Part shown: positions 15,401-22,516 of the stretch, in pieces
Layout: the number at the start of each line of letters is the position of its first letter
Numbering within the stretch: the first letter of the stretch is position 1
NCBI GenBank assembly: GCA_965240325.2
Contig: OZ251231.1
Coordinates: forward strand, 868,001-932,000
Direction of reading: 5' to 3'
Length of the DNA stretch: 64,000 nucleotides
DNA from: Rebecca billardiae RCC1528
Lineage: Eukaryota > Protista > Haptophyta
Notes under the pieces: model-generated
What the model saw: only the letters and a program-made list of their open reading frames with translations
Databases searched by the model: none
What the model was told of the DNA's origin: nothing
Translations under genes and position numbers: made by a program

Positions 15401-16591
15401 GCAGCCGATCTGACCGCCGAGTCTGCCACCATCGCCACCACCGAGCTCGCCGGCGAGCCCACCGCCATCGCCGGCACCGAAACCGCCACCCTCGCCGCCG
15501 CCAAGTCCGGTATCAAGCCCGCACCTCCGCTGCTTCTGCCGCCAAGCCCGACCCCATACCCACTCTGAGCCGTCGGCTGCAGGCCTTGGGTGGCGTGTCA
15601 ACTGCTGCAGGCGGCCACGGATGACTCGCGAGCTGGTCATGTCCCCGCCAAGGCGTCGCCGTCGACGCGGAGGTTGAGCCCGCCAGGACGATGGCACGTA
15701 CTCTGCCACGTCCGAGTGAAGAGTGGCTGCCGAGCAGGCGAGCAGTCGCGCCACCATACCCGGCAAGAAATTTGGGTCCGCGCCAAGCATTCACTGGCCT
15801 CCGAATCCGCGCACGCCTCCCGGACTAGGGCCGGGGCATGCATGCACCGTCAATCTACCAAGTCGGAAGCAGCTCGACAGCCCCGCTGCATGTGCGCGCG
15901 CGCCTGCCGGTACGTCCGCTGCCCGCTCGAGGGCGAGCGCACAGCGCCTCGCCTGTCGACCACGACAGGCGCGCCTCGCGTGTATCAGTATACTCTGATG
16001 GCGAGGCCCGGGAGGCTCCGCAAGCGTGTTGGCGCAGCAGCACATGCCCATGGCCTGACCCGGGTTGTGCTTTGCCAGCGCGATTGCGTAGGGGTGTGCG
16101 GGGCACCATCTGCTCGCGGTTGGGTTTGAGAGCATCTGCTAGAGGCTCGTGTTGCCGGCGCCGCCTGACGGCCCCGATGTCGTCGCCGGAATGGAAGGGC
16201 ACCATCGCGCCGAGCTAGAAGAGAAAGCCGGTGTCGCCGCCGTGCTCGAGGCGCCAGCTGGCGCACGCAGCCTCGCTGACCATGGCGTATTGCCGGTCGT
16301 CCACCAGGACCCGTCTCGCCGCCGGCCGCCTCCGCCGCGTCGGAGCGCGCGTCGCGCTTGGTCGTCTGGCGCATGCACAATTCATCCCGAAACGGTGGCG
16401 GTGAAGTACTGCCCACAACCGTACGCGGACGGGTAGAAACGTCATACTACTTTGCCCGGTTCGTCAATTTATCATAATTCCGAGCGACCTGCGACCGTCC
16501 CGCCTACTTATTTATGGTGGGGGTACCCTGAAACCAAGCCCCGTGATTTCAGATACTCGATTGACGGAACGACCGCGCCGCGAGACATCCC

Positions 16592-19220
16592 ATGGTGGGT
16601 GGTTCCGACACGCCCCCACCACCAGGTCGGAGCGCCACCGTGGCGCCGGGGGGCGCAAGAGAAGACGGAGCGATCACAGAGCACGCCGCATCACCACCTG
16701 TGGAATCGCCATCCACATTCCGTCGATCGCCCCGCCCACCTTCTCAGCAGGAACTCGGTACCGTGCAAGAACGGCTCGAACATGCGCGTGAGCAGGGCCG
16801 CCGTTTTCGTGAACGTGTGCAGCTGCCGACGGTCGGGGCTGGCCTGTTGTGCGTGGTGCTAGGTATTGTGACGCCATCGATCTACCTGGGGATCTTTGGC
16901 GTGTCCTACGATCCGATCTATCTCGGCATGGTGCTCTGGCTGCCCGGTGCCTTTGTGGCACTGCTCGCGCTCCCAGCAGCACACTTGCGCACGATTCGTG
17001 TCACAACCGCGCTCATCTGCTCGGCGGTGCTCGCGTGGGCGGCGCTCGAGCTGCACGTTGCCATCGCGTTCTGGCTTCAGCATGCCGCCTGGCGCGCGGA
17101 CCAGACGGCGCGATGCCACGTCGTGGAGTCGATGCTGCCGCCGGACACGGTGCCGTGCGAGTACGCGCTGTTGGCCGCGCTGTGCAGCTCGGTGCAGGGG
17201 GCCACTGGGCTGGCTGTTGTCTCGCTGCTCGCGGGTAGGCTGCTGGGTCACAGCCGCGCGCACGAGCTGTTCGCCCTGTGCACCGCCGTGCTCGGCGCGA
17301 GCTTTGCGTGCATGGGCGCCGTCCGGCTGGTGCGCATCGCGTACACGGCTGCAGCCGTGCCGACTGTCGCGCAGCTCTCGCTCATGTGGGTGTCGTATTG
17401 CGTGGGCGCCGTCGAGGGCCTGCTGCTCGGCCCGCTGCTGCTCTCCTCGCGCTTCCGCGCCAAGGCGCAGGCATGGCTCGCCCTCCGCGGCGAGGCCATC
17501 GGCACCGCCGCCGGCATCGCGGCTTTGATCGAGGACCGGCCGTGGCAGGACCTCGAGGCGCTCGCGCGGCAGCTCTTCCGCGGCGTGCCCGCCGATCAGC
17601 TTGAGCGCGAGGACCTGGGGTCGTCACATCCGGACCCGGCGCTCTTCGCCAAGTCCGTGCCTGTGCGGTACGGCGAGGTGGACGCCTTCGTGACACATTC
17701 GTGCGCGCACTGCGTCCACCGTGCCGCGCGCGCTGCGCGCCGCGCGCCGCCTCGCCCCCACGTGATCGGTGTGCGCTGCGCGGCCTCCCGCGCGCCGCGC
17801 ACAGATGGCGCGACGATGCGGATGACAAATGGGCGGCGCTGCAGGCGTGGCGCGAATCCTTCGTCTTCCGGACAAAGCGCGAGCCGATCGTGTGGATCGG
17901 TGCGCGCACGCACCTCGCGCCTTGGGACGGGCCGCTGCGGTGCTGGGCGCGGCAGGCTGACGCGTCGTGTCGCGTCGCGTCGCGCTCGCGCCACCCGCTG
18001 CGCGCACACCTGCAGACCGCCTGTGTCTCAACCAGACGCAGATCGACGACGAGATCGCGTGCCTCCCTCTATTCCTCGCCGGCTGCAAGCAGCTGCTCGT
18101 GCTGGCCGGCGACACGTACCTCTCGCGGCTCTGGGCGTGCGTGGAGCTGTACGTGTTCCTCGAGATGGGCGGCGATGCGGAGCAGATCGAGGTGCGGCCG
18201 TTTGGCCGGCTCAGCGCGGCGGAGCAGCCGAGGCTGCGCGCGGCGGCCGCGGACAGCGGCGGGTACAGCGCAGACCCCGCGCGGCTGCACCCGCACGGTA
18301 TCGACCGCTCGCCCCGCTCGAGCGCGTCGCCGGCGCACCTCGCGCACGCCGGCACTGACGTCACGGCCCGCGACGCCTCGCCCTCGAGCTCGGCTGTGCG
18401 GCAGCCGCCGATGAGCAGCAGCTGTGCGGGCCCGACGCCGCCGCAGTTGACGCCGCAGCCCACGCGCACGGCGCGCTCGCCGCGCGTGACCGAGGAAGGC
18501 GAGCCCCCGCGGGAGCCGCCCCCCTCGCCGACCACGCGCAACATCGCGTGGGTCGAGGCCGAGGGCGCGCGCCGGCTCGGCCCGTGGGTGGACGAGCCGA
18601 TGCTCGCCCTCGAGGTGGCGCTCGCCGGCTTTGACGTGGCCGAGGCGCAGTGCGACGACGGCGCGATGCGCGAGCGGCTGCTCTTCGTGATCGAGGCCGG
18701 ATTTGGCTCGACCGAGCGCTTCAACGAGCGGCTCAAGGCCGTGATGCGCGCCGCGCTGCAGCGTGCGCGCAAGGAGGCGGAGGCGAGGCGAGCGCGCCGC
18801 TCGTCGCGCCGCTCGTCGGCCGAGATGCGCAACCCACGGCGCTCGTCGCGCATGAGCGGCTCGTCCCTCACGCCGCCGAGGACGCCGAGCGTCAGCGGCA
18901 CCAGGCGTGTGGTGCCCGGCGCGCAGCGCCTGTCCCGCGACTCGAACGACGTGACGGGACTCGCGGGGTCGCGGCTGCCCCACGTCAGCTCGCAGCCGAC
19001 CATGGCGCAGCTGGGCGAGCCAGAGTCGGGGGCGTCGGCCGCTGCAAAGGGCGTGGGCGACGCCATCCCCGAAGCGGACAGGCGGCTGACAGGAGGCACC
19101 TCGATCGACCTCCTCATCCCCGGCGCCGACGGGGCAGGCGGCGAGACGGGCGCGCCGGCGCCGGCCGCCTCCTCGGACGCCCCCAGCTGCTCTGAGAGCA
19201 GTGGCCTGCGGCCGCGCTGA
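16592..19220 (+). CDS. Multi-pass membrane protein with cytoplasmic TIR/HET-like domain; exons 16592-17700, 17805-17899, 18016-19220
   Basis: About 6-7 hydrophobic segments. Splicing GT-AG introns 17701-17804 and 17900-18015 yields DAFVTHSWRDD..KW..VWIDRLCLNQ..LPLFLAGCKQLLVLAGDTYLSRLWACVE. Confidence 0.8.

Positions 19221-20526: not shown

Positions 20527-20610
<84 letters not shown>
20527..20610. repeat. (TA)n microsatellite
   Basis: Directly visible. Confidence 0.98.
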
Positions 20611-20648: not shown

Positions 20649-22376
20649 TCACAGCGCCGCGGCCACGGTAGAGCCATGGGCGGGCAGCATCAGCTTGCTG
20701 TCCTTCGCAGTCGTACCGGCAGCCTCTGCCTCAGCAGAAGGGCCGAGCGCGAGTGCCGCCTCGGCGTGCCCGCGCCACTGCTCGGCGGGCGAGATGTTGC
20801 ACCGAAGCGCAAGGGCAGATCCACGCAGCAGCGCCGTGGCGCGCGCGAGTGCGACGAGCTCGGGCGGGAAGCTCAGGATGCGGTCGGAGCGCATCAACGT
20901 GCGCCGCTCGCGCGAGCGCAGCATGGCGCCATCCACGCGCGAGAGCAGCATGCGCGCGAGCGAGGCGATGAACGCATCGTCGTCGCGCTCGGTGCGGATG
21001 CCGAGGTCGCGGAATGTGTCCGCGACGTGCGCGTCGGGCGCGCGGTCAGCGACGGCGACGACGAGCCGCGCAATGCGCGCGCGGCTACTCGCGTCCAGCC
21101 GCTTGCACTGCCCGTAGTCGATCAGCCCCAGCCGGCCGTCCGGCATCACGAGCACGTTGCCCGGGTGCGGGTCCGCGTTGAAGAGGCCGAGCCCAAACAC
21201 CTGGTGGCCGTACACGTCCAGGAGCGCGTGCACGCGCGCCGCGGCGGAGGAGAGCAGCAGCCGGGCGCGCGCGGCGCGGTCGCGCTCGGCGGCGGCGGCG
21301 TGGAGCGCCCGCGCGCCGGGGATGGGCACCGAGCTGGCGGCGCGCGCCAGCGCCGCGAGCGCCAGCGCCGCGAGCGCGCACGCGCGCTCGAGCGCGGCAA
21401 ACGCCCAGAGCAGGCCGCTTACGCCGACCACGCGCGCGGCGAGGCCGAGCGCGGCGCGGCGCGCTCGGCCCTGCGCGCGCGCGGCGTCCTCCTGCGCGAC
21501 GATCCACTGGCGCACGCCCCCCGTGGGCGGCTCGACGCCCGCGGCGCGCAGGCCGGCGTGCACCGCGCGCTCGAGCGGCTCGCCTGGCAGGTAGCTCATC
21601 GTGAGGACGCGAGCGGAGCACAGCGCGGGCAGCACGCGCGGCACGTCGATCGAGCGCGCGTAGCGCGGGAGCAGGGCGTCGTGCAGCTCGGCGAGGTTCC
21701 GCCGCTCCCGCGCGAAGTCGAGCTCGCTCTCGTACTGCCGCGAGAACTCGTCGAACACGGGCTGCGCCTCGGGCCGCGTGAGCCGGACGAGCGTGCGCAA
21801 CGAGCGCAGGTCGGCCGCAAACATCGCGGGCACGCCGGGCAGCTGCACCTTGACGACGACGTCCTGCCCGTCGTGCGTGGTCGCCCGGTGCGCCTGCGCG
21901 ACCGACGCGGCGCCAAGCGCGCGCGCGTCGAATTGCGCGAACAGCTCGTCGAGCGGCGCCTGCAGCTCTGCCTCGATCACGGCCGCGATCACGCTCGAAT
22001 CCTCAGCCGGCATGTGCGATTGCAGCACGCGCAGGCTCTGGATGTATGCGGGTGGCATGAGCTCGGGGCGGGTGGACATCTGCTGCCCAAACTTGACGAT
22101 GAGGCCGCGCAGCTCCATTGCCACTGCGAGAGCGCGCGGCGCGTGGCGTGCGTGCAGAGCGTCGCGCGCAGCGCGCTGCGCGCTTGGATCATCGCCCGCG
22201 TGCAGCTTGTCGGAGATCCAGTACTCCGCGAGGATCGGCCCCGCTCGCGACCAAAAGAGAGCCTGGCGGCGTGCCGAGGGGTCCGACGCCGCGAACGCGC
22301 TCACACCACCGGCCACGACGACGCCAGAACCGAACGCCACTCGGCGCCACGTCCACACCGTGCGAGCGGCTGCCAT
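20649..22376 (-). CDS. ABC1/UbiB (ADCK) atypical kinase
   Basis: KFGQQMSTRPE, ALGAASVAQAHRA, VVVKVQ, ELDFARE, FNADPHPGN, LIDYGQ. First ATG is at 22376. Confidence 0.95.
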   Translation of the reverse strand: MAAARTVWTWRRVAFGSGVVVAGGVSAFAASDPSARRQALFWSRAGPILAEYWISDKLHAGDDPSAQRAARDALHARHAPRALAVAMELRGLIVKFGQQMSTRPELMPPAYIQSLRVLQSHMPAEDSSVIAAVIEAELQAPLDELFAQFDARALGAASVAQAHRATTHDGQDVVVKVQLPGVPAMFAADLRSLRTLVRLTRPEAQPVFDEFSRQYESELDFARERRNLAELHDALLPRYARSIDVPRVLPALCSARVLTMSYLPGEPLERAVHAGLRAAGVEPPTGGVRQWIVAQEDAARAQGRARRAALGLAARVVGVSGLLWAFAALERACALAALALAALARAASSVPIPGARALHAAAAERDRAARARLLLSSAAARVHALLDVYGHQVFGLGLFNADPHPGNVLVMPDGRLGLIDYGQCKRLDASSRARIARLVVAVADRAPDAHVADTFRDLGIRTERDDDAFIASLARMLLSRVDGAMLRSRERRTLMRSDRILSFPPELVALARATALLRGSALALRCNISPAEQWRGHAEAALALGPSAEAEAAGTTAKDSKLMLPAHGSTVAAAL

Positions 22377-22516
22377 CGTGGCCGGATGATGATCCACCGG
22401 GCAAGCTTGACGGCATCAATCCGGCATCAAGAAAATGCGGCCGGTCGGGCCCGGACGCGAGCGGCGGCGGCAGCCATAGTCGCTGCATCGGCGCCTCGGC
22501 GGCGACGTCGGCGGTG

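Follow-up and report, generated by a model that had tools for sequence, protein, structure and literature searches.

A three-exon haptophyte gene for a predicted six-pass membrane protein ending in a probable TIR-superfamily domain

We analysed a stretch of 64,000 nucleotides from the haptophyte Rebecca billardiae RCC1528 (contig OZ251231.1 of assembly GCA_965240325.2, positions 868,001 to 932,000; hereafter the window, with positions counted from its first letter), and describe a gene on its plus strand at 16592-19220 that codes for a membrane protein with a TIR-like C-terminal domain. Judged by its frames, splice sites and codon usage, the locus is an intact three-exon gene. Its product has six predicted membrane helices followed by a helical linker, and its C-terminal domain is very probably a member of the TIR superfamily, in an unnamed branch that carries the WxDxxCxxQ block of fungal HET domains. 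The best explanation overall, and one that we consider probable, is a six-pass membrane protein with a cytosolic TIR-superfamily domain whose clustering would lead to NAD cleavage; taken separately, the NAD-cleaving mechanism is put forward as plausible but somewhat short of an even chance, by analogy with known TIR enzymes. Bacteria, plants and animals alike use TIR-type domains in immunity and cell death. To our knowledge, virus sensing and the triggering of death in bloom-forming marine algae are largely unknown.

Gene structure and coding evidence

Exon 1 (16592-17700) begins with an ATG at 16592, the first after an in-frame stop at 16562, and ends with the TC of a split Ser codon. Its translation runs from a disordered N-terminus through the six membrane helices and the helical linker into strand A of the TIR-like domain (VDAFVTH). 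Intron 1 (17701-17804, 104 nt, GTGCGCGCAC...CACAG) falls between the second and third bases of the Ser codon in FVTH-S-W (TC|A). Exon 2 (17805-17899, 95 nt) translates as (S)WRDDADDKWAALQAWRESFVFRTKREPIVWI(D) and supplies helix A and strand B of the domain. Intron 2 (17900-18015, 116 nt, GTGCGCGCAC...CTGCAG) falls between the first and second bases of the Asp codon in WI-D-RLCLNQ (G|AC), and exon 3 (18016-19220) runs from there to a TGA stop at 19218-19220. Both introns are of the GT-AG type and end in CAG. Neither intron length is divisible by three, so that each exon lies in a frame of its own, and a list of open reading frames (ORFs) therefore gives only fragments of the gene. The sequence-only reading had proposed just this arrangement, with two introns and a domain spread over three frames and hidden from the ORF track, and comparison with homologues bears it out. 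The exon pieces tile end to end onto homologues derived from MMETSP transcripts (P0007 and P0015), gapless at both junctions; the exon 1 piece can be aligned to the family homologues, and exon 2 is 61% identical to the transcript-derived P0007, again without gaps.

The intron positions recur in the family. At least 11 paralogues have an intron at the position of intron 1, within the SHSW Ser codon or directly behind it, with a GTGCGC or GTGAGC donor; in 4 further paralogues it lies one base later, and in 4 it is absent there. Near the site of intron 2, paralogues L003, L005, L007 and L008 are also split and many others are continuous. A word-based search of a collection of 5.8 billion proteins with the exon 1 region gave no match at E <=1e-3, the gene itself included, and no transcript of this exact gene was found; the support for the splicing is thus comparative.

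Codon usage agrees with the proposed frames. From the membrane module onward, all exon segments show a G+C content at third codon positions (GC3) of 0.84-0.95 in these frames, together with a marked dip at the second position. Exon 2 has a GC3 of 0.84, and in the first part of exon 3 (18016-18218) the G+C content at codon positions 1/2/3 is 0.70/0.39/0.93. The introns have no such coding pattern: in intron 1 the corresponding values are 0.80/0.80/0.86, and the second-position drop of a coding frame is missing. The coding sequence of ~2.4 kb is open in all three exons, with no internal stops, and specifies a product of ~800 residues.

Over 16592-16789 (about the first 66 codons), GC3 is only 0.45-0.70 as opposed to 0.84-0.95 in the remainder, which could reflect an upstream exon that escaped detection, a wrongly placed start or a ramp in codon usage at the 5' end. 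Both introns open with one and the same ten bases, GTGCGCGCAC (17701-17710 and 17900-17909), and GTGCGC(G/C) donors stand at the same codon in many paralogues (loci L002-L034); the sequences suggest that the 5' splice-site consensus of this genome is unusually GC-rich and extended. In one paralogue (L011, G000 C23:109050-112589), a microsatellite of the (CA/TG)n type occupies the position of intron 1 at about 2200-2330 and reads HTHTHT in one frame, which suggests growth of a simple repeat within intron 1. A 497-amino-acid (aa) antisense ORF on the minus strand (17624-19117), lying over most of exons 2 and 3, was set aside as an artefact of high GC, since the conserved family sequence reads on the plus strand.

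The C-terminal domain and its relation to TIR and HET

Once the exons are joined, the three motif blocks named by the sequence-only reading are all present: FVTHSW across the exon 1/exon 2 junction (FVTH-S-W), WIDRLCLNQ across the next (WI-D-RLCLNQ), and TYLSRLWACVE within exon 3. The core of the domain in exon 3 (18016-18218, plus strand) contains (D)RLCLNQ, CLPLFLAGC, LLVLAGDTYLSRLWACVELYVF and IEVRP, and is 46-58% identical to paralogues. A motif scan places RLWACVE at 18126-18146 on the plus strand, with its Trp codon at 18132-18134 and the codon of a putative catalytic Glu at 18144-18146. Ten positions are invariant in 73 family members, namely F, S and W in strand A, W and D in strand B, a Pro, and R, W, C and E in the last motif; as the motifs fall on family-invariant positions, they are not due to chance. 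The window copy retains eight of the ten, with Ser replaced by Thr in FVTHSW and Cys by Ala in RLWACVE, and the same variants occur in intact paralogues (Thr as DAFITH in L022, Ala as RLWAVVE in L002). The Glu, like the Trp four positions ahead of it, is invariant in the 73 relatives and is kept in the window copy. This Trp/Glu spacing is that of the plant SxWCxxEL motif and of the Trp/Glu pair of AbTir and SARM1, and the catalytic role of the Glu is established for TIR domains.

The rest of exon 3 is less regular. The domain is interrupted at 18219-18578 by a low-complexity insert of ~120 residues, rich in Ala, Pro, Ser and Arg and absent or far shorter in relatives (alignment A2), which is probably a disordered loop. 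Candidate GT..AG pairs for an in-frame intron are present within this interval, but the in-frame GC3 of 0.95 argues that it is coding, and such an intron was rejected. The C-terminal part of the domain, which is conserved, follows at 18579-18770 (FDVAEAQC, RERLLFVIEAGFG, RFNERLKAVM; alignment A2), and the equivalent helices of the paralogue model described below (192-206 and 209-221) fall inside its TIR-aligned range of 49-227. A disordered tail rich in Ser, Arg and Pro, with a GC3 of 0.91, extends over 18771-19220 to the TGA stop; the tandem repeat finder reported a 12-nt repeat in it at 18793-18822. All three segments lie on the plus strand.

Searches with the window gene were made exon by exon, and the fold of the TIR-like domain was taken from an uninterrupted paralogue (L009:1222-1950) whose identity to the window gene is 52% in the exon 3 core and 43% in the linker. 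Its model, from a 73-row alignment, has a pLDDT of 88.6 and a pTM of 0.85. With this model as query, TIR domains filled the top 28 rows of a Foldseek search, with a best E of 8.7e-3 and probabilities of up to 0.97; among them were RUN1, RPP1, SNC1, BtTir, AbTir, SPARTA, ThsB and SARM1. A second look with VIA likewise returned TIR domains at all of ranks 1-46 (Z 8.9-6.8; 91-136 aligned residues, 2.5-4.5 A). In a search independent of Foldseek, against 48,161 chains, ranks 1-10 were all TIR (Z 7.9-6.7), followed by nucleoside deoxyribosyltransferases, SEFIR, LOG and DprA, which are recognised structural kin of TIR. The structure search that the sequence-only reading had proposed for the spliced protein was therefore made on a paralogue in its place, and there it gave a TIR fold. 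Like the catalytic TIR domains of SARM1, plant TIR-NLRs (RUN1, RPP1, RPS4) and bacterial AbTir, ThsB, SPARTA and SpbK, the domain has, in the paralogue model, an alpha/beta fold (Z 7-9) with a Glu after strand C and a Trp four residues before it, whereas identity to catalytic TIRs is only 7-18%, and the window gene's domain differs in its long internal insert and in the additional helical linker on its N-terminal side.

Sequence models point the same way at a lower level. Pfam gave no relevant match to the window exons taken one by one. Uninterrupted paralogues matched TIR_2 at best at E 0.031 (15 bits, cut-off 28) and HET at E 0.083, both sub-threshold. Among the 73 relatives, sub-threshold matches recurred to TIR_2 in 19 (best E 1.8e-4), to HET in 11 and to TIR in 4, never above threshold. 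The best HET matches, at E 0.019-0.083 and 13.7 bits (cut-off 22.5), covered the WIDxxCxxQ block only. When run on the genome, the TIR_2 model picked out some ten canonical TIR genes, all at other loci, and no member of the window family; the Pfam HET model had no match on the genome, and the controls were likewise empty. The TIR/HET-like label given by the sequence-only reading thus stands on the paralogue's fold and on these recurrent weak matches; it does not extend to recognition by any curated model.

Three conserved blocks, including WxDxxC[IL]xQ, define HET, and this three-block layout is present in the window sequence. As in fungal HET domains (PF06985), an aromatic-Ser/His-x-W block is followed by WxDxxC[IL]xQ and, ~35 residues on, by a W...E block; fungal HET is also a remote relative of TIR and has undergone large lineage-specific expansions. 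In fungi, however, the domain is N-terminal to NACHT/WD or lectin modules, whereas in the window gene it is C-terminal to a six-helix module. The HET-defining blocks, a link between HET and TIR, and HET homologues in Haptophyceae, with an Emiliania sequence in the alignment, have been described by Dyrka et al. in 2014 (PMC4986451). HET domains induce cell death by a mechanism that is still unknown (PMC10890737); the NAD+-cleaving role which the sequence-only reading gave to the Glu of both families is established for TIR and not for HET.

These features allow another explanation, in which the protein is a membrane-tethered death executioner of the HET type that acts by an NAD-independent mechanism and is triggered by other sensors, being no sensor itself. 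The hallmark WxDxxCxxQ block, the sub-threshold HET matches in 11 of 73 relatives, the unexplained way in which HET kills (PMC10890737) and the tiny outer surface of the six-helix bundle, with little room for binding a ligand, all fit this explanation. We consider it unlikely: HET is itself regarded as TIR-related (PMC10890737, PMC4986451), so that it overlaps with the enzymatic TIR explanation, and relatives bear sensor-like N-terminal modules (C-type lectin, EF-hand), which fits an output domain shared by many sensors, the membrane module included.

Several points weigh against the assignment and against the enzymatic explanation built on it. No curated TIR or HET model (PF13676, PF01582, PF06985) reaches its gathering threshold, and HMMER family profiles found no TIR among PDB sequences, with hydrophobic noise from the full-length profile and nothing relevant from the domain-only one. 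A profile comparison by hhalign of the family with nine canonical TIR_2 domains of the genome was weak and not significant (E 0.017, probability 2.7%); in a correct register, it pairs the two A strands, WLD with the LD of strand B, and LLVLAGPTY..RLWC..EL with VVV..S..Y..S..C..EL, with the family Glu on the canonical invariant Glu. The fold is that of a paralogue model, and the window's own domain spans three exons. The Z values are moderate, and the tool warns that matches below Z 8 may mean a shared arrangement only; the argument for TIR is carried by the coherence of the match list. The window copy departs from consensus at two invariant positions of the domain and at several conserved positions of the membrane module. 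Finally, many TIR domains are non-enzymatic adaptors.

Membrane module, proposed mechanism and known systems

The membrane module lies at 16829-17443 on the plus strand and is predicted by both hydropathy and AlphaFold2. Exon 1 contains six hydrophobic segments, with Kyte-Doolittle peaks of 1.6-2.2 and helices at about residues 80-104, 109-130, 138-162, 192-215, 226-251 and 262-284. The AlphaFold2 model of exon 1 (64-row alignment, pLDDT 80, pTM 0.73) has helices at 52-102, 107-125, 132-174, 189-214, 220-255 and 262-284. Of the six or seven membrane helices counted by the sequence-only reading, six are therefore upheld by both methods and a seventh is not. Arg-rich stretches flank helices 1, 2/3, 4/5 and 6, all on one side, from which both termini are predicted to be cytosolic. 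The module leads into a linker (17447-17698, plus strand) that would also be cytosolic and that contains RFRAKAQAWL, AAGIAALI and LFRGV before strand A (GEVDAFVTH). This linker is the best-conserved portion of exon 1 (alignment A3) and is helical in the model at 286-298, 301-312 and 318-328.

A fold search with the six-helix model against 48,161 PDB representatives found generic helical bundles only (Z <=9.2). A G-protein-coupled receptor (GPCR) or other seven-helix receptor was rejected, there being six helices and no GPCR among the structural matches; the matches of the family profile to PDB sequences of 5-HT2A (E 0.003), other GPCRs and transporters are noise from the composition of hydrophobic segments. 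Cytochrome b561 was rejected as well, being a generic match amid unrelated bundles (Z 8.1 and 7.9); it has four haem-ligating His residues, and the membrane part of alignment A3 has no conserved His. The sole sizeable predicted outer loop (residues 163-191) has ~29 residues with two Cys, and the module contains no ligand-binding domain that could be recognised. With one outer loop of this size, the description of the protein as a receptor-like sensor in the sequence-only reading is a conjecture.

The mechanism that we propose by analogy with known TIR enzymes would run as follows. The six-helix module would hold the TIR-like domains at the membrane with both protein ends in the cytosol. A stimulus would cluster or rearrange the protein so that these domains meet, and their meeting would complete an active site around the Trp-x-x-x-Glu, as in SARM1, plant TIR-NLRs, Thoeris and AbTir. 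That site would in turn split NAD+ or produce a signal derived from NAD, for stress, antiviral or cell-death signalling.

The main rival to this mechanism is an adaptor role, in which the domain would signal solely through homotypic contacts with other TIR/HET-like proteins, as in TLR/MyD88 signalling, and the membrane protein would serve as a scaffold or docking site with no enzymatic activity. In the structural comparison, MyD88, MAL, TRIF/TRAM and TIRs of the IL-1R family score level with the enzymatic TIRs (Z 8.9-7.2), the genome offers more than 100 potential partner domains, and the window copy lacks the otherwise invariant Cys next to the Trp. For HET, too, the first proposal was recruitment of other HET proteins (PMC4986451). 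On the other side stands the conservation of the Glu and Trp across all 73 diverse relatives and in the window copy itself, which is what would be expected of an active site. Recent work, moreover, has animal immune TIRs and an algal TIR as catalytic, the latter a green-algal protein with Glu-dependent production of 3' cyclic ADP-ribose (3'cADPR) that groups phylogenetically with TIRs of haptophytes and dinoflagellates (bioRxiv 10.64898/2026.04.20.719644). We therefore regard the adaptor role as rather unlikely, if the strongest of the alternatives.

Among the closest described counterparts of the proposed membrane-held TIR enzyme are proteins of another haptophyte. The TIR proteins of Gephyrocapsa (Emiliania) huxleyi include multi-pass-membrane and extracellular-domain types, and those that have several membrane helices at the N-terminus and a conserved Glu are reported to respond to infection by virus (New Phytol 2025, PMC12489294). 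As in the predicted window protein, membrane helices precede an intracellular TIR-type domain with a conserved, putatively catalytic Glu, there is no nucleotide-binding site (NBS) or leucine-rich repeat (LRR), and the biochemistry is uncharacterised (PMC12489294). The G. huxleyi proteins were found by Pfam TIR profiles with HHsuite, whereas the window family misses all curated TIR and HET thresholds; the two sets were compared by description. The architecture is not new, since HET-like domains in haptophytes and multi-pass-membrane TIR proteins have already been published. The sequence-only reading knew of no functional characterisation of it in algae; HET-like domains were reported in 2014 (PMC4986451) and membrane TIRs in 2025 (PMC12489294), and the R. 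billardiae genome itself has some 60 such genes.

Family, paralogues and genomic surroundings

The genome assembly comprises 72 Mb in 41 contigs. A six-frame search of it with the exon 3 piece gave 133 matches, ~95 of them at E <1e-3, and the membrane-plus-linker piece gave 60 matches, ~40 near full length. Paralogue counting had been suggested by the sequence-only reading, which is answered by these 60 membrane-module and ~95 domain matches and by relatives in Diacronema and Symbiodinium. Judged by sequence, the window gene is one somewhat divergent copy in a lineage-expanded family of ~60 six-helix modules and ~95 or more domains. It is a singleton, with no second copy in the window, and its closest paralogue over the membrane module is only 34% identical. 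The collinear layout of RxRVQLP, six helices, an AAxIAALxG linker and the domain is common to P0006, P0007, P0015 and P0050.

Beyond this genome, 83 protein clusters from marine eukaryotes match the domain (E 7e-159 to 1e-16), from Symbiodinium, Diacronema lutheri, MMETSP transcriptomes and many marine metagenomes. Most have the membrane architecture, 8 carry a C-type lectin and 1 has EF-hands; no precomputed Pfam match lies on the domain itself in any of the 83. Diacronema is the nearest named relative of the paralogue query. A protein atlas returned only unnamed haptophyte clusters, all below the 0.9 score level; with the paralogue domain as query, a haptophyte cluster containing H-NOX was listed at a low score of 0.75. 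Both the Diacronema relative and the atlas clusters point to a haptophyte source.

The divergence of the window copy raises the question of whether it is a decaying or silent paralogue in a family of fast turnover, with no function of its own. Such an explanation would draw on the 34% identity to its nearest paralogue over the membrane module, the departures from consensus at two of ten invariant domain positions and several membrane positions, the ~120-residue insert inside the domain, the GC3 of 0.45-0.70 in the first ~66 codons, and the empty search of the 5.8-billion-protein collection with the exon 1 region. The exons, however, stay open over ~2.4 kb with canonical sites at both splices, the in-frame GC3 of 0.84-0.95 includes the insert and the tail, and the Thr and Ala variants are shared with the intact L022 and L002. 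Because of the open frames and the strong codon bias, we hold a silent or decaying copy to be less likely than an adaptor, and improbable altogether.

A bolder version of the proposed mechanism is that the six-helix module, with hardly any outer surface and no match to a known fold, is a new sensor of membrane state or virus entry that directly gates an NAD-cleaving domain of the TIR type, and that the ~60-gene family, with its lectin and EF-hand cousins, forms the main innate-immune or cell-death receptor repertoire of haptophytes and dinoflagellates. In function, such a repertoire would be the counterpart of plant TIR-NLRs or animal TLRs; we offer this as speculation and consider it unlikely. 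The window gene adds one member to a very large protist family of membrane modules with TIR/HET-like output that is biochemically untouched. Taken together, the members of this family would be a good choice for a first assay of NADase activity or signal molecules, and the window copy itself adds little beyond the literature, being a real but ordinary member of a known, uncharacterised kind.

Elsewhere in the genome, three paralogues lie within 8.5 kb (G000 C12:125037-133452), and inverted pairs occur at C11:493666-498429 and C14:198914-204046, the C11 copies with stop codons. Such clusters point to local duplication with some decay. Two genes, at C5:1949398-1950210 (minus strand) and C13:1545244-1546164 (plus strand), each contain two tandem Pfam TIR_2 domains in one frame of ~890 aa and are distinct from the HET-like family.

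The region around the window gene has a GC content of ~68-71%, and its neighbours, a minus-strand ABC1-type kinase and a protein with an RNA recognition motif (RRM), are unrelated to it. The kinase is the downstream neighbour, an ABC1 atypical-kinase frame on the minus strand at 20649-22394 (PF03109, E 2.6e-47). A plus-strand ORF of 613 aa over the same DNA matched no family and probably results from the high GC content. In the gap separating the TIR-like and kinase genes, a perfect (AT)42 microsatellite (20527-20610) is set in sequence with a GC content of 65-70%.

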